From contig NC_068996.1 of assembly GCF_001194135.2 (NCBI RefSeq), positions 53,251,297 to 53,315,296 of the forward strand: a stretch of DNA of 64,000 bases. The letters run 5' to 3'. Positions 27,789 to 52,887 of this stretch are shown piece after piece. A program made the translations under genes and the position numbers. This DNA comes from Octopus bimaculoides. Taxonomy: Eukaryota. Under the pieces are notes generated by a model, which was not told the origin of the DNA, searched no databases, and saw nothing but the letters and a program-made list of their open reading frames with translations. Positions within the stretch are counted from its first letter, which is position 1. The number at the start of each line of letters is the position of its first letter.

Positions 27789-29059
27789 CAGACTTATGCA
27801 CCGGTCTTATCTGTTCATCTGTTTTCCGTTTCTTTTTTGGTGGTGGTGGGTCAGGGATGTCTGTGTGTGTGTGATCCACCCAAAATATATCATTCAACCA
27901 ATCATACATCGGATCTTCCGACTGCAATAAAGTATCGTATGTTCGCTGGAGAAAGATTATGTCTTCTAAGTCAATTCCTTTATTATATATGTCAAAGAAG
28001 ATTTGTTTTTCTTCCTGATAGGTCCGAGGCTGGAATTGAACTTTTGGTTTAATTACTGTGTCCATAATATCACCTTCTCTTTCGTTTACCGATTTATTTG
28101 TGATATCACTCAACATTGAATCCTTGGTGCGTTTCTTTTTCTTTTTGGGTTTTAATCTATCATCATCTATTGCCATCTGACTTTTTGGCATGGTGACGCC
28201 AACTGCTGATGCAGCAGCAAAATGGTCACCAACTGCCCATGATGGTCGCATCTGTACTTCTGATGCAGACTCATCCGTTAATTTATAGTCTTTAAAAGCT
28301 GTCTCAGATAAAGCTGAGTTGCCCGTTTCCAATGATTTACTTTCATCGTGAATACTTCCAATTGCATGAGGTAAGCAGTAATTGTGATCAATAAATATCT
28401 CCACAGGTGGATTATCCTCGTCACATGATTCAGTACGGTCTGAATCATCTGAGTCATCAACACTATGACTGGTATCTTCATCTAATTTTAAGTTCAATGA
28501 TGGTGAAACTCCTTGTGGCCCAGCAGCAACATAATCGTGTTCAGCAATTGCAGGAACAACATATGCTTTTGACCGATCTGCTTTACACACATCTTCATCG
28601 ACCGCAGTAGTCATTTCTGATGAGATATCAGCAACTGGTACATCCTGTTCATTTGTCATAGTGGAATTTCTATCTTCGTCTGTTTCATCCCAAACTTTAC
28701 ACGGTTTCTTTGCAAAAGTATTTAAATTCACACCATCTATTTTGTCTGACGTAACATCAGCTAATTCTGCACCACTAGCCAACACTTTTGGTGTTATCAC
28801 ACAATGCTCTGAATCTACTAATGAAATCTGTTCATCCACTTTGTTTTCATTATCAACACAAATTTCAGATTTTTCAATATTTTTTGTTTCTATCTGGTCC
28901 TTTACCAAGTCATTTGTAATAACGTTTTGACATTCATTCATTTCTAATTCATTAACAAGTAAATTTTGTTTTGTTTCTTCTTTGACTGGAGATGATGGAA
29001 GTTTAAGACACACAGATAATTCTGGTTTTGAATTATTTGACACTTTGGGTTCAGTTTCC
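27789..29059 (-). CDS. SETD1: SETD1 exon: disordered region with EHDY/DHNY motifs and start of the N-SET domain
   Basis: 1271 nt, phase 2/1, ttgcag|G and G|gtaagc. FQPRT..EE..I..DIY..GID.EDI..L...Y..LL...WLND..WVDH is the N-SET pattern. Confidence 0.95.
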
Positions 29060-29069
29060 CTGCAATAAC

Positions 29070-29117: not shown

Positions 29118-29556
29118 AAACATAAAAGCAAAGTAAGGAAATACAAATAACGGGTGACACAAAAGTGGTGTCAGTTGCACAATCAAGAGTATAAATGCAC
29201 ATGTACACAAATATAAAGATAATAGAAATATCTGTCCAGACAAATCACAAGTATATCTGTAACCAAACCATCACAGAAGCAGTTAAATGTCTTGACAGTA
29301 CAATCGAGGTTATTAGACGAACTGGATGATAAATTCGAGAAAAACAAAAGTGCAACAATTTGAACACTTCACCAAATAGCAGTCGTGTTCTTCAATGTCA
29401 AATATAAAATTTATACGTTTCAACTTTGCTCTATAGTTATCTCAGCTTTGCTTTCTAGACTAGATACATCACCTTAAATCAAAGATATTCAGCTGAAATA
29501 AGGTAAAAATTAAAAAAAAAGGTCAATACTTCAGAGAAAATCAAGATCCCTAGTAC

Positions 29557-29847
29557 ATTATTTACATTTTGACAGATATTTGTCCTCATCTTGTTTGTTG
29601 TTAACACAACGTTTCGGCTCATATACCCTCCAGCCTTCATCAGGTGTCTTGGGGAAATTTCCAACCTGGGTTCTCATTCCTAAGGTATCTTTCGATGATA
29701 TCATTATTATTCAGGTCACTGCCTGGAATTAAACTCGGAATCTTGGGGTTAGTAACCAGCGATCTTAACCACTATGCCATATGCCTGCTGAAAATACCTT
29801 AGGAACGAGACCCCAAGTTTGAAATTTCCTCAAGACACTTGATGAAG
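29557..29847 (-). mobile_element. Complete pLTR copy C (tRNA-like head + AAT tract + hammerhead) with an adjoining inverted partial pLTR at 29791-29847
   Basis: Direct comparison with the other pLTR copies in the window. Confidence 0.8.
29603..29648 (-). ncRNA. Minimal type I hammerhead ribozyme, intact core (copy C)
   Basis: Minus strand reads GACAC-CUGAUGA-A-GGCU(G)-gagggtatat-(G)AGCC-GAAA-CG-UU/GUGUU. Stem I is GACAC:GUGUU, stem II is GGCU:AGCC, stem III is the palindrome AACGUU, and the predicted cleavage triplet is GUU. Confidence 0.75.
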
Positions 29848-30610
29848 TTTTGCTTTTTCTAGTACCTGTCTCACCTTCCACCTTAGTTCATTTCCTTGAG
29901 CTTTTGGTATCTTTACGGCTATCTCCTCAATAGGGGCTATTATGTCCAAATATGGAATGCGCTTGGTGGTTGTCGCAAAGTTGAGACCTTTGTTTAGTAC
30001 TGCTTCTTCAAAGCTTTCCAGGTGTCAGCTACTTACATTAATTACTTCTTTCACAGGTGGGTGACGGATTTCAGTCTCTCACCTTTGAATTTCATAAACT
30101 TCTTAATCTAGCATGTATTCACCATTTCAAATTCTTTCATGTATGACTTTTCCAGATCTTGTTCATCTCTGGTTATTTTCCTTTGATTTTGTTATTTAGC
30201 TGATGTTTTTCTCCAATGGTTGTAATGGATCCTCTCACGGATGAGGGCATGTCCTGCCCTTTCCTAGCTATATATGAATCCACTGGTGTCATTATATACA
30301 AGCGAGGTGGTTTTAGCTTTGAGTCTTTACATCTACACAGGATGGTTAGATGGTTTGAAAGACGAGCTAGTTTTTGATGGAATTTCTCTATAAGTCTCCA
30401 TTGAAGTCTAATGTCAGCTCCGTACCAATTAGATAATACAGTTCTATATTTAAGAGATGAGGAATTATTTACATTATTTACAATTGACAGATATTTGTCT
30501 TCATCTTGTTTGTTGTTAACACAATGTTTTGGCTGATATACCCTCCAGCCTTCATCAGGTGTCTTGGGGAAATTTTGAACCTGGGTTCTCATTCCTAAGG
30601 TATTTTTCGA

Positions 30611-30641
<31 letters not shown>
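29845..30641 (-). mobile_element. Penelope-like element terminal repeat (pLTR, copy D) plus N-terminal part of the PLE ORF
   Basis: The repeat is shared with 29557-29785 and 17208-17555. Translations KLARLSNHLTILCRC and LNKGLNFATTTKRIPYLDIIAPIEE resemble the PLE N-terminus. Confidence 0.8.
30518..30563 (-). ncRNA. Hammerhead ribozyme copy D, core mutated
   Basis: Same 46-nt motif, but GAAA reads AAAA and the stem III CG reads CA. Confidence 0.65.
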
Positions 30642-31619
30642 GTCTTTCAAGTGGATGGACGTGTCTCCTGAAGCTCTGTAAGTTGTTGCTGAATTTTGTA
30701 TGAATATTTGTTGAAATTTGTAATATTTGTGTATATTTGTGTAGCCAAACCAACTAGGTTCTTGCGGAGATGGTCAGTTAGGCGAAGTTTTCCCCGTTTT
30801 AGGGGCAAAATTTTCATTTAAATTCTTGAAATTTCTCATTTCATACTTATTAATTTTTGAAAAATGTCTTTGAAGAGAGCAGCGAGCTGTTCCCTTCTTT
30901 GTGTACCACACCCTCTGGAGACAAATGACAAAACAAGTCGCACGTCAACATGCCCATCTCACGTCTTAAAAGGCAAAGAAATAAATTTCGAAGAGCATTC
31001 CACCACGTGCAGCGCTACTGAATCAAATGTATTGAACCGCCTTTCCGATATACATTTCTCTGCTCTTACCACCACTATTGCTCCTACACTGGAGAAGGAG
31101 GAAGAGAAAAAGAAAAACATACTAAAGAAGACATCAGCAACACCACCAAAAGCCATTGTAACGGTTTCACTTCTGCAGAGCTCGGAAGAAATCAAAGTTA
31201 CAATGGAGGAAATAAAGGATGCAAAAGAGTTGTTAAGGAAAGACGGAAACAATGTCTTCCTTAACACTCCACAAGCCCTAATAAAAGAAACAAACAGACG
31301 AACAATTACATACAAAATTTTCAATAGAAATTACAAGAAAATAGAAATTTCTATAAATTTGCCGGACAGCACAAGAATACACATTGCTGTAGAGAGACGA
31401 AGGCCAAAGTGTTACCTCTGCAGCAGTGACCAACATTTGAAGGTAGACTGTCCTATCTACAAGCATAGAATGGAGGCAGAGAAAAAGAAAAAATTGCAGC
31501 AGCAACGACGACAACAACAGGAGGTGCAGCAGAAAGAAAAACCTAAAGCCTCCACACCACCACCACCACGAAAAGCGACACCACCTCCAACCATCACCAT
31601 ACCAACACCAAAGAAAAGG

Positions 31620-31651
<32 letters not shown>

Positions 31652-34444
31652 TTCAACAGAAATTTCATCACCAACTGAAACAGACCCCAAAGACATCCCC
31701 TTTCCTGACCAAATCAGCTCGGATAGTGTGAGTACTGAGTGAGAAAGGGGAGTGGCACACTGTGCCACCAAAAAAAGAGAGAAGGAACAAAACCAAAGGA
31801 ACAAGTGACAAACAGGGGAGGTGCGAGAAAGGAGAGCTTCCCAACATCATCAACAACAACAACATCCCCTCACAACAATTAGCAACACCTTCTCCACCCC
31901 TAACACCACAAACACCAACACTTACAAACACCACCAACGTTACAGCAANNNNNNNNNNNNNNNNNNNNNNNNNNNNNNNNNNNNNNNNNNNNNNNNNNNN
32001 NNNNNNNNNNNNNNNNNNNNNNNNNNNNNNNNNNNNNNNNNNNNNNNNNNNNNNNNNNNNNNNNNNNNNNNNNNNNNNNNNNNNNNNNNNNNNNNNNNNN
32101 NNNNNNNNNNNNNNNNNNNNNNNNNNNNNNNNNNNNNNNNNNNNNNNNNNNNNNNNNNNNNNNNNNNNNNNNNNNNNNNNNNNNNNNNNNNNNNNNNNNN
32201 NNNNNNNNNNNNNNTAAATACCATTTTTTGAAACATGGTCGTACTAAGAATCAGCAATATAAATGTGAGAGGCCTCGGGTCGCCTTGGAAACAAAGTCAC
32301 CTGCTGAACGACTTGAGGCCTTACAGTGTAGATGTAGCAGCCATTAGCGAAACCGGGCTCTCCAACCCACAGGAACTCACAGCCCTTTTCGGCGGATACG
32401 AGATTTTTCTATCTCCGTGTCAGCCGGGAGCAGACAGTGGTGGTACTGCGGTGCTATTTCGGAAAGGCCTGGATTTGAAAATAAAGGCAGTCTTCCTGGA
32501 TCCAGACAGTAAGTTGGTGGTCCTGGACGTGGACGATAGTAACGGTCGTGCCTTCAGACAGCTGGCTGCCTACGCTCCAACAGGAGTGGGGCAGTCGGAT
32601 TATTTCAAACGTCTGGAGGTTTTCCTGGGTACGTCTCGCATTTAGTGCTAGTTGGGGATTGGAACACTGTCTTAGACGAACGTATCGATAGGGTGGGTGC
32701 GGGAGCATGATAGGAGAGTGGGGTGCAAGAGCCTCGCCAACCTACTCAAACGCTTTCAGCTGTCCAACAGGTATTGACTAGACAACCCGAATGTGCCGCG
32801 ACTCTCGGCCAGTGAGGCGGAGTGCTGCGAAGGACCAATATCTACCTGGGAAGTACAAGAAGCAATGAAAAGCTGCACAAGAGGAAGATCGCCAGGTTTA
32901 GATGGTCTGCCCTACGAGCTTTATACTTCAATGCCAGACTTGTTTGCGGACCTCTTGGCAAATGTCTACTGCAACTGGCAACAAAACGGGAGAATTCCTG
33001 CTTTTGTTTGTCGAGGAGTGGTAGCTTTGCTAAGAAAAGACCCAAACAAGGGGGACGTGATAGGAAGCTTTAGACCCATCACTCTGTTCAATGCAGAGTT
33101 GAAGATTTTGGCCAAGGTGCTAGCCAAGAGGTTGGCGCTTGTCGTGGGCAAGCTGATCGGCAAGGTGCAGACATGCGCTGTACTGAACAGGTCTATCCAC
33201 GACAACCTCCATCTCATGCGCTACATCATTGAGAGGGTGGGTAACGAAGCTGGCGCGGGTGGGGCTCTGATCAATTTAGATCAGTCTAAAGCAGTCGATA
33301 GGGTCAACCATCGATACCTGGCAGCTGTTCTCAAGGCAGCAGGTTTCAGTCTGGTCTTCTGTGGGTGGATAGCTGCTTTATACAGCGGCATCTGCTCGGT
33401 CATACGGGTGAACGGTCACCTTTCCGAGCCGTTTAACATCTTGCGTTTGGTTCGCCAAGGATGCCCTCTCTCCTCCTTCCTCTACGTTATGACTCTTGAG
33501 CCATTACTGCAGAAGTTGGAGGCTTTGAGGGGTGTCCCGCATAATCTGGGATGTGGAAAGAGCATGTCTGCCTATGCCGACGACGTCACTGTGATGGTGT
33601 TGAGCCACATCGACCTGATTGGCGAGACGCTAAACAAGTATGAAGCAGTGACAGGTGCGAAAATTAACGCGGAAAAGTCAGTGGGCTTGCACTGGGCACC
33701 TGGAGGGGCAAGTCCATGCCGTCCAACAACGTCATAGGCTGTTGGATAGACGGTCTCATTAAACTACTTGGGGTCTGGTTCGGTCCAGACCTCCAGGAGG
33801 AGAAAAACTGGGAAGAAGTGACGAGCAGGGTGGCCAATCGCACCCAGAAATGGGCTGAGAGGAAGCTGTCCCTGAAAGGTTGAGCGGAAGTGGCAAATGC
33901 GTACATCGCATCCGTCATCTATTACTGCTTGACCTTCATTTCTTGTCCCGACCACTGGTTGGCCAAGCGCTTGCTCTTCGATTTTCTGTGGAAGGGTCAG
34001 GTACCACTGGTCAGGCTCTCCATCTGCTGTCAACAGCCGCTGAACGGAGGCCTTGGCATGACGTGATTGCTGATGCACAAACATGCGCTCAGGCTATGAC
34101 ATCTCAAGTATTTCCTGGACGGTGAACAGGTGTGGTCGCCGTTCATCAGACGCGATTTTCCGCAGCTCGTTTCTTTAACAGAGCTGCAATCCTGGATCAA
34201 ACGTAGACCGAGAAAGGGTGCTTGGCACCTCGAATGCTGCCAAACTCTCACCACCCTCAGTCAGGCAGGCAATGCGATCGGTAGTAGTTCCACTTTAGCG
34301 TTCTATTGAGGGTTAGCGGCAGAAAAGTGCGACGACGTTCTCAGGGAAACTCTAGGCAATGACGATAATCAACTAAAAAGTCTGTTCGGAAGAACTTTCG
34401 GGCCAGGGCCCATGGATAACTTCCAATGGTCCCTTGCCTGGCAA
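30642..34444 (+). mobile_element. L1-clade (Tx1-like) non-LTR retrotransposon: 5' UTR, ORF1 with CCHC knuckle, degenerate ORF2 (APE + RT), 3'-truncated
   Basis: ORF1 30864-31742 has CYLCSSDQHLKVDC. APE motifs NINVRGL and DVAAISET from 32235. RT motifs SPGLDGLPYE, FRPITL, LDQSKAVDRVNH, QGCPLS and YADD in 32793-33737. Confidence 0.9.
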
Positions 34445-35860
34445 TTATTATTATTCAGGTCACTGCCTGGAACTGAACACGGAATCGTGGGATTGGTAGC
34501 CCATGCTCTTAACTACTACGGCACATGCCCATGGGCAATTATGGAGTCAATTTTTAGGGCTTATAAATCTAATATTTTCCTATTCTTCCTTAACATTGGT
34601 TCCCATATGCTGTTCACATCTACACTCAGTCTGCTTAGGAGGTTGTTGTGTCCTAGCATATGTGCTGCTTCTTTTAGTTTTCGTATTTTCCAGTGGTGTT
34701 CTCTGTCTATTATTTTAACTTCATCCCACAGGGGAAGGTGGTCTCCATTTTTCCATACATGATCAGCTATACCCGATTTATCAATATCTCCTTGTGTCAC
34801 AGCTTTGCAATGTTCCTCTACCCTTATTTTGAGGGGGCGACATGTTTCACCTTTGTATAACCTACCACAGCTGCATGGGGTGGAGTACACGCAGTCTTTG
34901 GTCATATTCTCTTCTATTGGTGGTTTTTACCTGAAGGAGATATTTGCAAAGTGTTGTATTACTCTTGAACACTGTCCTGATGTCAAATGGGCCACATATC
35001 TTTTGTATCTTTCCAGAGAGGCCTTTCACATAGGGTAGACAGACTGTGGTCAGTTTATGGGTTTCATCTTCTCTCTTCTTCATAATTGGAGTGGATACTA
35101 TACTTTTGGGGTAGTTGTTGCTTAACAGATCGTTATTGAGCTTGATCATTTCTTCATGGTGGGTATCACAATCGCTACTTATATTCTTTGTACGATGTTT
35201 TAGGCACTGAGCAATCCCTTTCTTTACACTGTATGGATGGTGGGAATTGAAGTTAAGGTATCGTCCAGTGAAGGTTGGCTTGCGGTATACGGATGTCCTG
35301 AATCCATACTTGGCGCATGTTATTAAAACATCCGAGAATGCTAGCTGATTGTCTTTTTCCTTTTCCATTGTGAACTGTATGGATGGCTTTATTGAGTTCA
35401 CATAATCTAACAGCACTTGGACATCTTCCTGGTGCGGCCAGAGTATAAAGGTGTCATCAACATATCGCAGTCATAGGGTTGGTTTTAGTGGTGTTGATCC
35501 TAAAGCCAAATTCTCAAAGTATTCCATGTATATATTGGCTATTATTGGAGATAAGGGCAAACCCATAAGTAAACCCTCCTCTTGTCGATATATATCAGAA
35601 TCCATACTGAAATAGGTAGTTTCTACACAGAAGGTCAACATTTCCATCAAGTTCCTTATTGCTATACTAGTGCGGTCTTTTAGATGGGTGTCTGTCACTA
35701 CTTTGCTTTTGAATCACCGATAGTGCTTCACCAGTTGGGACTTTGGTGAACAGACTTATCACATCTACATTCACCATCACGCTGGATTCAATGGGGGTAT
35801 CTTTGATCAATTCTGTGAAGTGGGTGGAATATCTGTTGAATACAGTTTCTTAAAACTGTA
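34445..35860 (-). mobile_element. Penelope-like element, degenerate RT + GIY-YIG endonuclease, 5'-truncated
   Basis: Motifs VDVISLFTKVP, EGLLMGLPLSPIIANIYME, YVDD, YRKPTFTGRYLNFNSHHP and VYSTPCSCGRLYKGET..R..EH across frameshifted ORFs. Followed by the tRNA-like head of the terminal repeat at about 34447-34530. Confidence 0.9.
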
Positions 35861-47170: not shown

Positions 47171-47225
<55 letters not shown>

Positions 47226-47819
47226 NNNNNNNNNNNNNNNNNNNNNNNNNNNNNNNNNNNNNNNNNNNNNNNNNNNNNNNNNNNNNNNNNNNNNNNNNNN
47301 NNNNNNNNNNNNNNNNNNNNNNNNNNNNNNNNNNNNNNNNNNNNNNNNNNNNNNNNNNNNNNNNNNNNNNNNNNNNNNNNNNNNNNNNNNNNNNNNNNNN
47401 NNNNNNNNNNNNNNNNNNNNNNNNNNNNNNNNNNNNNNNNNNNNNNNNNNNNNNNNNNNNNNNNNNNNNNNNNNNNNNNNNNNNNNNNNNNNNNNNNNNN
47501 NNNNNNNNNNNNNNNNNNNNNNNNNNNNNNNNNNNGAGCCCAGACCAGTGCCATAGAAGACACTCGCCCAAAGTGCTGTGCATTGGGACTGAACCTGAGT
47601 CCACATGGTTAGGAAGCAAGCTTTTTAGCCATAAAGCTACACATGCATCTTTAAATATCAATAAGAAAAATTAAATTAAAAAAAAAAAACTAAAGCTCTT
47701 TCTGTTTCCCAATTCCTGCCAGCAATTTACGCAATTTATAAATTTAGTGATTAAACCATTTTGTATAACAGTATGTTTAATGATCTGTTATAGTTTATTA
47801 CAACTTTGTGTGAACACAC

Positions 47820-50150: not shown

Positions 50151-50257
50151 ATATTCAAAATAAGAATAATTATTTAATAAGGAGCTAAAAAAGGAAGAAA
50201 TATTACCACCATTAATGCAAAATAAATAAAAGGAAAAGTTGTAACGCTAGAACATAC

Positions 50258-52449
50258 CTTGCTCTTTTGTTCTTCTGCATCCCACCATTTTTCAAAGGAT
50301 TTGAAAGCAGAATTTTCAACCATTTTTTTGCAAAGATCTTTCTGCATAACTTCTTTTAGCTGTCGTACGAAACTGTCCAAGACAAAAAGGAAAGTTTTAT
50401 CATTAGGATCTTTTTCTTCGTCTGATTGTGTTTCTTCATTGGTAGTTCCATTTCCTTTGTTGCTTGTACCATTCTGTAATGTTGTAGAATCACAAAGACT
50501 CTGGTTTAGGAAGTTTACAGGCACAACACTATTTTGGATGTGGGCAGTATAGCTTTGATTGTAATTACTGCCAGTGGATTCAGAGCGGCTTGGAGTATTT
50601 AGGTAATTACCAAATGAATAAGAATTAGCAAAACTCCATGGTGCTATACTTGGAGGTGGACGTGAAAAATCAGTTATGAGTGGAACAGGTGGAGCGGCAC
50701 CTGATGTCTGTGTGCTTGGTATTGATTGAAAGTTGTTGGCAGTAAATTTACCATCGTTATTTGGTATTTGAACATTTACTTCTAATTTTTCATCTCCACT
50801 ACTAATTGATGATAAACTCATGCGATCATCATCATCATCATTCTCATCCCCTTCGTCATCCTCTTCTTCCACCTCTTCTTTTTCTTCTTTTGCATTATTA
50901 TTTTCAATGTCCATATGTGTGTCTTCAATATTACTTTTAACATTTGGAACACAGCTGTCTTCAACCAAAACTTTCGTATGAAAGGGTGATTCAGCACTAG
51001 AAAATGTTTTTGATTGGTTAATATTACTAAAATCAGTTGACACAGCAATTTCAGGTTCAAATAACTTATCCCCAACTTCGGATTTATATCGCGCTGTGAC
51101 GTTATTTGAAGGAATATTACAAGAACTAGTACTGTCTGCAGGGGCCACTTTATCAATTTTTTGTTGTTCATAATTAGTCAAAGACAAAGAGGTAAAGCAA
51201 TTATTTTTAGTTTCAAATCGTTTGTTCTTGTTAGACATCTCTTTAGAGAATTCAGTCCATTCAGATGTATCAGTTTTGGAAGTTACAGAATGCTTGCTCT
51301 CCTCTTCAGATGGTAATTTAGGAACTTGTTTTGTATGGCTGTTGTTATTTACAGTATTATTACGTGAGGGGACAGAATGTTGCGGATTAGAAGAGTATCG
51401 TGAATCAATACTTGGGGGTGTACTTGCTTCATCTCTTGATAGTGGTGTAGATGGAGGACTGGAATGGTCTTTAGATCGACTTGAATCTGTTGGGCTGCCT
51501 AAACCCCCAAGTCCGAAGATACTTAGTAAACGTGAATCTAAACTTTGATTACGTGGTTCCTCAGCTTCTGGTGTTTTTGGACGATTCCGATGGTCTTTCT
51601 CTCGTTGCTTTTCTCGAACGTCTCTGTTTGAATCTGTCCAATCTTTAACACTTTCGCGCTCAGACTCCCAGCGTTGTTGCGAGAAAGATGATGTTAACTT
51701 GTCTTTATACTCGTCTTTTCTCTCTGTATATGAATGAGATCGTGAGGAACTTTCTGTTTGTGATTGTGTTACTTCGGTTGACAAACAAGGATGCCCACTT
51801 TCATAATGTGTCTGTTGTGGCTGTGGTGGTTGTGGTGGTTGTGGTGGCTGTGGTGGCTGCGGTGGCTGCGGTGGCTGTGGTGGTTGCTGTTGCTGCTGCT
51901 GCTGCTGCTGCTGCTGACAATAGGGTGAAATTACTTGTCGATTTGAATTGGGTTGTGTAAATTGTGTTGCACTGTATTGATATGGTTGTGCATGCTGCGA
52001 TACATTGTAATGAATGTCCAGTCCACGGTTAGATTGGACATGTGACGTTGAATACTGGCTGTAATTTGAATAGCTGCTGGATGTAAAGCTAACCTCAGAA
52101 TGATCTGAGAAGCTGAGTTCAGATTGTGGAACAGACCGCTGAAGACTGCTATAATCACTGTCTGTGAAAGAGCCAGTTTCAATAGATTTAGAGGACACAT
52201 GATGACTAGAAGTGCTACCAAAATCAAACTCCAAATCACCTGGGTCATATGCTTCCATCCCATAGTCACTATATTTGGATTTGCTCAGTGTGAAGTTGCG
52301 ACAAGTGCTAGATCGATTACTTGAAGTTGTAGCAGCTGCATATAAACGGCTGTGTGATCGTGGATCTACTCTTTCTGAAGGTTGTGGACGTCTTGTACTT
52401 TTGGGTTTGTCAGCAAGTATTTCCTCAATAATGCGATTTCTTTCTTTGC
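50258..52449 (-). CDS. SETD1: SETD1 large exon: Ser-rich and Q/P-rich disordered region, SLDSR motif, acidic tract, KDLCKKMVENSAFKSFEKWW helix
   Basis: 2192 nt within ORF 50174-52465, phase 1/0, acceptor ttttag|GC, donor AAG|gtatgt. SLDSR and KKMVE..AF..F..WW are conserved SETD1 motifs. Confidence 0.95.
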
Positions 52450-52887
52450 CTAAAAAATCAAACAAATTAAATTGATAGCTTTATCATATTAAAATTATAA
52501 GATATTCAAGAGAAACATTCAACAAAATTTTCACTTCCATTAAAAAAAAATGTAAAAATAGTTCTGAATTTTACATTTTTTGCAAATTCCTATAATATTT
52601 ATTAAACCATTGTAGTCATTATCTAGTCATTACATGAAAATTAAAATCTGTAATAATTCTGTAAAAAACCATGACATCATAATTTCGTAATCTACAGGAA
52701 GTAACAAATGAAGAAATTAACGTACAGAAGCAGTGTTTTGTTTTAAATAAAAACAAAATTACAAATATAGGGGAATTTTTCATTTTTTTTTTTTCATTTT
52801 ATCTAGTTTCAGCTCATGAGCTGTGGCCATGCTGGGGCACCGCCATTTAGTTACAAATTTGAAAAGTATTCTCTGCTTTCTTCTTAA

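Follow-up and report, generated by a model that had tools for sequence, protein, structure and literature searches.

A minimal hammerhead motif in a SETD1 intron of Octopus bimaculoides as a probably inert relic of a Penelope-like element

Introduction

Does an intact ribozyme motif in an intron of an essential gene act on the transcript that carries it? The question is raised by a 64,000-nucleotide (nt) stretch of the Octopus bimaculoides genome (assembly GCF_001194135.2, contig NC_068996.1, forward-strand positions 53,251,297 to 53,315,296), referred to here as the window and numbered from its first letter. At 29603 to 29648 on the minus strand, the window holds a minimal hammerhead motif in an apparent intron of a SETD1/SET1-family gene. 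An earlier note on this DNA had proposed that the pre-mRNA of this histone methyltransferase carries a potentially self-cleaving RNA that could affect splicing kinetics or transcript level. Our analysis points the other way: the motif is very probably a standard minimal type I hammerhead of a decayed Penelope-like element (PLE) fragment, an inert transposon relic in the SETD1 intron.

Results

Direct reading of the minus strand from 29648 to 29603 gave GACAC-CUGAUGA-A-GGCU-GGAGGGUAUAUG-AGCC-GAAA-CGUU-GUGUU, which confirmed the letters and boundaries of the motif as first described. Helix I (GACAC/GUGUU) has 5 bp including one G.U, the C3-A9 box is CUGAUGA followed by one extra A before G10.1, and helix II (GGCU/AGCC) has 4 bp, with G10.1-C11.1 as its first pair and a 12-nt loop. 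After helix II come G12-A13-A14, A15.1-C15.2-G16.2-U16.1, U17 at 29608, and N1.1 at 29607, and numbering from 29648 places the predicted scissile bond at 29608/29607, where it had been put before. A generic hammerhead core test on this copy, hereafter copy C, found the C3-U4-G5-A6-N7-G8-A9 box, helix II, and G12-A13-A14, together with the A15.1-U16.1 pair and an H17 (U17); the 15.1-16.1 pair is possible only between two molecules. The earlier note had described stem III as the palindrome AACGUU. A palindrome exists, but the part that could form helix III in a dimer is ACGU (15.1-15.2/16.2-16.1, 4 bp), since A14 and U17 belong to the core and the cleavage site. Intramolecular helix III fails, as C15.2 and G16.2 are adjacent and the loop is 0 nt. 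By a minimal hammerhead ribozyme (min-HHR) descriptor written for this analysis, copy C was the sole match in the 64-kb window, and none of the 300 second-order-Markov simulated windows used as background held a match. The motif is far beyond chance.

The min-HHRs of PLEs are defined by the catalytic boxes, a nucleotide placed between 9 and 10.1, a G10.1-C11.1 pair, and a palindromic 15.2-16.2 without helix III, and they have a short helix I and frequent opposite-strand pairs 100 to 700 bp apart (PMC4209133). Every one of these hallmarks is present here, which bears out the assignment to the minimal type I hammerheads of the PLE kind. The extra A needs no appeal to the chrysanthemum chlorotic mottle viroid (CChMVd), as had been made, since an extra nucleotide is itself a published hallmark of PLE min-HHRs (PMC4209133).

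The 46-mer recurs with 3 mismatches at 17434 to 17479 (+) and 30518 to 30563 (-), and self-BLAST with alignment delimited a repeat unit of ~150 to 190 nt with five copies in the 64 kb. Copy C, for which a consensus was also used, spans 29553 to 29700 (-) in the order ATCGAAAGATACC...ATG...hammerhead...AC-rich stretch...AAATAATGTA. Copy A (17209 to ~17352, -) is sense to the gene and is without the 35-nt tail that makes up the long 3' end of copy B (~17383 to 17556, +); both have mutated hammerheads. Copy D (30439 to 30641, -) has a dead hammerhead at 30518 to 30563 with (AAT)11 before it and runs into a PLE open reading frame (ORF); it is the mutated partner that the earlier note had placed ~900 nt upstream of copy C, and it lies 915 nt upstream. 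Fragment E (29791 to 29847, +) is an inverted partial copy that extends over the repeat's 5' portion as far as the CUGAUGA box.

Copies other than C are mutated mainly at the two CpGs of CCGAAACGUU. The hammerhead of copy D carries G12A and G16.2A, both at CpG sites, that of copy A carries G12A, A13U, and C15.2U, and that of copy B carries C15.2G and G16.2A. Copy C was called intact, which holds for its core, but the copy is not pristine: the family consensus helix II has 5 bp (GGCUG/CAGCC), and in copy C the closing pair is lost via a C->G change. Divergence from the family consensus ranges from 2.8 to 6.7% across copies (4.1% for copy C). At such divergence, roughly one-quarter of copies would keep ~30 constrained positions by chance, by our own estimate, which ignores CpG hypermutability. 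Survival of the copy C core through ~4% neutral divergence is best explained by chance, and the view of the element as special to SETD1 does not stand, as it is one of five PLE repeat copies in the window.

A PLE N-terminal ORF (MRTQVQNFPKTPDEGWRVYQPK...) follows on in frame from copy D and after decay reaches ...EEAVLNKGLNFATTTKRIPYLDIIAPIEE...VRQVLEKAKL. This decayed N-terminal part (29851 to 30592, -) begins inside copy D (MRTQVQNFPKTPDEGW...; ...VLNKGLNFATT...VRQVLEKAKL) and ends where fragment E begins, broken off after ...LEKAKL, at a point where Octopus sinensis homologues go on PKPNITKEE. A protein search with the 139-amino-acid ORF of copy D gave no match, but the downstream VLNKGLNFA segment did match, with 84 to 88% identity to "uncharacterized" O. 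sinensis proteins and, against a second (ENA) assembly, 56 to 63% identity in most matches and 73 to 78% over shorter spans. Ten loci around matching proteins (L001 to L010) were fetched, and a repeat-profile search gave 17 further matches. The same family is found in O. sinensis L001 to L003, and a second, more divergent family, only 75 to 78% identical to that of the window, is found in L004 to L010; genes adjoining the repeat in the fetched loci match RVT_1. A near-complete PLE unit occupies L003 from 9503 to 11993 (CM016860.1), in the order hammerhead/N terminus (9503 to 9925), mid motif (10091 to 10303), reverse transcriptase-endonuclease (RT-EN; 10814 to 11901), and 3' untranslated region (UTR), and it ends ...ATAGAACTG beside a microsatellite. 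In both L003 and L010, the hammerhead-bearing N terminus is contiguous with the RT-EN ORF. Two hammerhead copies lie 2.6 kb apart on either side of the ORF in L010, and a hammerhead copy lies ~300 nt downstream of the RT-EN ORF end in L004, L007, L009, and L010. These loci show that the repeat is the pseudo-long terminal repeat (pLTR)/ORF-start junction of a PLE, an order of transposons that is also annotated in Octopus vulgaris (PMC13282606). The 3' pLTR of L003 has an internal deletion that takes out the hammerhead.

The hammerhead lies inside the N-terminal codons TPDEGWRVYQPKRC of the PLE ORF (30592 to 30440, -, in the window, and L005, L010, and other loci), and the overlapping peptide TP[D/E]EGWR.Y[Q/R]PKRC is kept in both PLE families. 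A U->A change at N7 is D->E in the protein and an A->G change in helix II is Q->R, so RNA and protein constraints overlap. In the second family the core reads CUGAAGA-A-GGCUG...CGGCC-GAAA-CGUU and is intact at 7573 to 7699 of L005 and 2187 to 2313 of L010. Among 15 aligned copies, the extra A is invariant (15/15, both families), G10.1-C11.1 is G-C in 12 copies, copy C included (alignment pair 17-36), and one helix II pair varies among U-A, U.G, and C-G; the 15.2-16.2 palindrome is ACGU in copy C and appears in CpG-decayed versions (UG, CA) in other copies.

The window also holds a 5'-truncated PLE RT-EN remnant with one stop and one frameshift (34564 to 35701, -; weak Pfam RVT_1). Its best PDB match is a telomerase RT (E = 0.0018), which fits the telomerase-like nature of PLE RTs (PMC8557442). 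By eye, its C-terminal motif CVYSTPCSCGRLYKGETCRPLKIRVEEH (CVYS-x10-YKG...R...E...N) resembles the PLE GIY-YIG signature. The PLE ORFs in the window are broken.

The unit of this family runs from ORF stop through ~27 nt of 3' UTR, a ~73-nt tRNA-like module, (AAT)n, ATCGAAAAATACCTTAGGA, ATG, the hammerhead, and an AC-rich stretch to the 3' end. There are two alternative 3' ends 35 nt apart (the PLE "tail"), at ~+62 and ~+97 nt from the cut site. The short end (...AAATAATGT) is found in copy A and L001, the long end (...ATAGAACTG(A)) is found in copy B and at the 3' end of L003, and copy D and the 5' end of L003 carry on past the ...ATAGAACTG position into the ORF. Copies A and B form a single head-to-head insertion (17209 to 17556) in which an AT-rich microsatellite separates an inverted copy from a sense copy. 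Its 11-bp target-site duplication, ACATACATTTT, was read directly at 17198 to 17208 on the left and 17557 to 17567 on the right; the 35-nt tail is on B only. Fragment E and copy C are likewise inverted and head to head. PLE insertions are known for a 30- to 40-bp tail at one end and, at their 5' end, an inverted copy (PMC8557442), features put down to cleavage and priming of both strands, targets that contain ATT, and RT start at two internal sites (PMC11167929); a target-site duplication is a further signature described in these papers. The inverted copy, one-end tail, and target-site duplication are all found at A+B, and the inversion is found at E+C as well. Copy C would then be a short 5'-truncated PLE fragment joined head to head to the inverted fragment E, and it would adjoin a decayed tandem PLE made up of the RT-EN remnant, a pLTR split by a long interspersed nuclear element (LINE), copy D, and the N-terminal ORF remnant. 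We also considered the repeat as an antisense 3' end of a LINE or short interspersed nuclear element (SINE) with an (ATT)n tail; this was rejected, since the target-site duplication bounds the whole of A+B with the microsatellite mid-unit and since copy D and L003 run in hammerhead orientation into the PLE ORF. The A and B arms are ~90% identical and would fold into a ~150-bp hairpin in SETD1 pre-mRNA, a plausible double-stranded RNA (dsRNA)/ADAR substrate.

The tRNA-like module, which has A/B-box-like sequence, bears on how the short copies arose. With (AAT)3 it stands directly upstream of copy C (29703 to 29784, -), where it is 81% identical to 34444 to 34529, and the latter belongs to a PLE 3' UTR/pLTR start (34444 to 34563, -) that consists of the stop codon, GCCCTAAAAATTGACTCCATAATTGCC, the tRNA-like module, and (AAT)3 and is 88% identical to 11515 to 11625 of L002. 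The module sites proper are 29712 to 29784 (-), 34455 to 34535 (-), and ~11570 to 11628 of L002. The stop/tRNA-like junction is the same in the window (34563 to 34444) and in O. sinensis L002, on the strength of which an independent mini-SINE with an AATTGCC target-site duplication was rejected. ARAGORN called no tRNA in the window, so that "tRNA-like" denotes resemblance only; the module may derive from a captured SINE head or serve as a Pol III promoter or processing signal. It is possible, though rather unlikely, that the short ~190-nt copies (A, B, C, and L001) form a non-autonomous family of SINE or retrozyme type with its origin in the PLE pLTR, instead of being simple 5' truncations of PLEs; such copies would be mobilized in trans by PLE protein and transcribed either by Pol III, from the tRNA-like module, or from a pLTR promoter. 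All of them share the 5' boundary (AAT)n-ATCGAAAAATACC, copy C is preceded by the module, schistosome Sm-alpha SINEs join a Pol III promoter to a hammerhead (PMC6765202), and PLE pLTRs gave rise to animal retrozymes, a 2026 preprint argues. However, two independent copies have the module after the PLE ORF stop, which makes it part of the pLTR, and it is missing from A, B, D, and L001. The copies are moreover inverted pairs or solo, not the tandem direct repeats of retrozymes, and they are too few to separate a distinct lineage.

The intronic setting of the PLE fragment was borne out. The SETD1/SET1-family gene is on the minus strand, with a SET exon at 11434 to 11850 (Pfam SET), an exon at 27766 to 29043 whose homologues carry N-SET and SET (protein search matches ~38% identical), and a large upstream exon at 50174 to 52465. 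To judge from these exons, the copy C hammerhead is intronic and on the sense strand of the gene. A putative acceptor of the N-SET exon, a polypyrimidine-AG read from the sequence as TTATTGCAG/G at 29060/29059, lies 548 nt downstream of the scissile bond, in agreement with the ~550 nt given before.

Would copy C cut this transcript? In the ViennaRNA fold of the monomer, helices I and II together reach -8.9 kcal/mol, compared with a minimum free energy (MFE) of -9.7 kcal/mol for an alternative fold that pairs core residues, and the monomer cannot form helix III. In the established double-hammerhead model (Forster et al. 1988, applied in PMC4209133), two molecules pair to make helices I and III. 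On that model, the bond of a given copy would be cut by the CUGANGA/GAA core of its partner. The cores of D (G12A) and A (G12A and A13U) are dead, so that neither sense-strand partner can cut at 29608/29607; the suggestion that copy D enables cleavage there fails on its G12->A change, since the partner supplies the catalytic core. At best, the copy C core could attack the site of D or A, that of D across a C.A mismatch. Fragment E, moreover, is transcribed before copy C and is complementary to the 5' half of that copy, a stretch that takes in helix I and CUGAUGA. The 341-nt E:C context is predicted to fold into a ~65-bp hairpin (MFE, -111.6 kcal/mol; z = -6.3), and this predicted hairpin would bury stem I and CUGAUGA of copy C.

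Published findings point the same way. PLE min-HHRs did not cleave as lone motifs and were weakly active as dimers (PMC4209133), and the Poseidon hammerhead needs PLE protein for cleavage and has no RNA-seq ends at its site (PMC11167929). A 2026 preprint reports that retrozymes, argued to be derived from PLE pLTRs, are depleted from introns, which has only indirect bearing on copy C. As drawn from the literature, the native role of the motif would be protein-assisted, dimer-dependent processing of PLE transcripts, a role that is itself dispensable for insertion in vitro. At the SETD1 locus, copy C would be inert, with no monomer fold, no intact sense partner in the window, and its 5' half in a hairpin; inertness is most likely, and we infer that cleavage does not take place in vivo.

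The opposite view, that copy C is a consequential intronic ribozyme that cleaves SETD1 pre-mRNA alone, as a homodimer, or with D and thereby modulates splicing or transcript level, is very improbable. The copy C core is intact, on the sense strand, and 548 nt from the putative acceptor, there are in principle PLE proteins that help hammerheads to cleave (PMC11167929), and octopus genomes contain PLEs (PMC13282606). However, the monomer is without helix III and partner D has G12A, the 5' half is predicted to be paired with fragment E, and the copies are 3 to 7% diverged with CpG decay, as for neutral relics. Published min-HHRs are nearly inactive (PMC4209133), Rfam gave no match, and the PLE ORFs of the window are broken. 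The effect on splicing kinetics or transcript level that had been proposed is thus speculative and unlikely for a repeat relic with a dead partner, a competing hairpin, and no Rfam match. We would give little credence, likewise, to an effect on SETD1 pre-mRNA through low-level cleavage with the help of PLE protein or a chaperone (by C:C dimers or by the C core on A or D substrate halves) or through the E:C (~65-bp) and A:B (~150-bp) hairpins as ADAR/dsRNA-pathway substrates in an animal that edits its RNA extensively.

The remaining features of the region concern its other repeats. A LINE at ~30646 to 34443 (+), with an ORF1-like segment carrying a CCHC knuckle (30864 to 31742), an EEP endonuclease (32235 to 32645; Pfam Exo_endo_phos), and an RT (32793 to 33737; Pfam RVT_1), separates the PLE RT-EN remnant from copy D. 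It has (ATT)n at both ends and an assembly gap inside, and the (AAT)n microsatellite of the tandem PLE pLTR seems to have been its insertion site. When the presumed LINE ends were compared with the fetched loci by BLAST, no additional copies came up. At 34096 to 34157 (-), downstream of the PLE 3' UTR, a second stretch reads CUGAUGA-A-CGG...CCG...GGAAAUAC; it fails the hammerhead descriptor for want of a GAAA immediately after helix II, and it is probably chance or LINE 3' region. The assembly is scaffolded and repeat rich, with 1,253 N in several gaps in the window and many microsatellites, such as (ATT)n around 12.3 to 12.7 kb (sites include 2060 to 2250, 18650 to 18930, 31950 to 32230, and 47200 to 47540).

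Discussion

Several results weigh against the reading of copy C as an inert PLE hammerhead and were set against the evidence above. The Infernal search against Rfam hammerhead models that the earlier note had called for was run with cmscan and was negative: no hammerhead family was found on the window (gathering score), on 5 kb (E <= 10), or on 81 nt (E <= 10). The miss is probably attributable to the missing helix III and the extra nucleotide; with no Rfam match, hammerhead membership is supported by the descriptor and published work but by no curated covariance model. Covariation among the 15 decayed copies (81% of cells paired, compared with 12 to 51% in slid controls, and one compensatory pair) was not above shuffles, and conservation of the motif between families could be partly protein driven, given the overlap with the coding segment. 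On the side of the element, a GIY-YIG endonuclease was not confirmed by Pfam, by PDB phmmer, or by a PDB profile of five copies, and a single-sequence AlphaFold model of the putative GIY-YIG region was unusable (predicted local distance difference test score, 36). The LINE boundaries, and hence the tandem-PLE reconstruction, are likewise putative. On the side of inertness, co-transcriptional folding, helicases, or ADAR editing could open the predicted hairpin, and intermolecular C:C dimers or a PLE protein acting in trans could allow some cleavage. An exact-pattern motif scan of IMG/VR viral contigs and JGI metagenome contigs found nothing, which tells little, as not much cephalopod DNA is expected there. 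The least credible account of all is a chance resemblance of ordinary repeat or coding DNA to the hammerhead consensus, which would fit the lack of an Rfam match, the overlap with a conserved coding segment, and the nonsignificant covariation but not the 0/300 simulated windows, the presence of all PLE-specific hallmarks beyond the generic hammerhead (extra nucleotide, G10.1-C11.1, and ACGU palindrome), the position at a pLTR/ORF start as in Poseidon PAc (PMC11167929), or the intact core that recurs in the second family at L005 and L010.

For ribozyme biology, a PLE relic of this kind is of little import: metazoan genomes are known to contain thousands of PLE min-HHRs, and a single intact intronic copy is expected by chance. 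Before an "intact hammerhead in an essential gene" is taken as regulatory, its repeat membership, the logic of dimer cleavage, and locally competing structure should be checked. What the locus does offer is the anatomy of an octopus PLE family, with a coding-embedded hammerhead, a tRNA-like pLTR module, a 35-nt 3' end difference, and inverted insertions with a target-site duplication. This family is not individually described in the literature that we consulted, and its anatomy could aid cephalopod repeat annotation.

Comparison with known hammerheads

Among known hammerheads, the conserved intronic examples of amniotes that de la Pena together with Garcia-Robles reportedly described in 2010 (HH9 and HH10 in Rfam) are like copy C in setting: all lie in introns of protein-coding genes and are sense to the host transcript. 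HH9 and HH10 are single copy, conserved at orthologous positions, stable as monomers, and matched by Rfam. Copy C, in contrast, is a multicopy transposon relic with no monomeric helix III and no Rfam match. The CChMVd (+) hammerhead with its extra A10 (De la Pena and Flores 2001, cited in PMC4209133) shares the extra nucleotide between A9 and G10.1, but it is a viroid type III ribozyme from an unrelated context, and the relevant precedent is the PLE consensus. Metazoan non-LTR retrozymes are tandem direct repeats of ~170 to 400 nt with type I hammerheads that give rise to circular RNAs, whereas the octopus copies are solo or inverted, with D on a PLE ORF.

Among hammerheads of short dispersed retroposons, the schistosome Sm-alpha and Sj-alpha elements (Ferbeyre et al. 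1998, as summarized in PMC6765202) are alike in combining a tRNA-like/Pol III segment with a type I hammerhead. Sm-alpha hammerheads are canonical and active, with a helix III hairpin and loop-loop contacts, whereas the octopus motif is without helix III; unlike that of Sm-alpha, the octopus tRNA-like segment is part of a PLE pLTR and is missing from most short copies.

A close match in structure is with the PLE min-HHRs of Cervera and de la Pena (2014; PMC4209133), which are alike in type I topology, in the CUGANGA...GAAA core, in a helix I of 3 to 5 bp, in pLTR location, and in occurring both as dispersed single motifs and as opposite-strand pairs. Metazoan PLE min-HHRs are also the subject of Lunse, Weinberg, and Breaker (2017), insofar as that work is cited in PMC6765202. 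The schistosome families have a helix II of 7 to 8 bp (PMC4209133), compared with 5 bp (4 in copy C) and a 10- to 12-nt loop in the octopus family.

Poseidon PAc of Anolis carolinensis (Frangieh et al. 2024; PMC11167929) offers a parallel for the element as a whole. In both, the hammerhead overlaps the PLE ORF start, although the PAc ORF starts at stem II, whereas the putative octopus ATG is 34 nt upstream of C3, which would put all of the ribozyme within the coding region. Both elements have an AC-rich stretch downstream of the ribozyme, and the 3' ends of PAc fall at two sites tens of nucleotides past the cut and 30 to 40 nt apart, compared with 35 nt in octopus. Both target strands can prime in PAc, which leads to inverted insertions, and its targets are AT rich or contain ATT; the octopus insertions are alike in these respects. 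The anatomy of the octopus family thus agrees with the mechanism recently proposed for PLEs, with internal RT initiation and two-strand priming.

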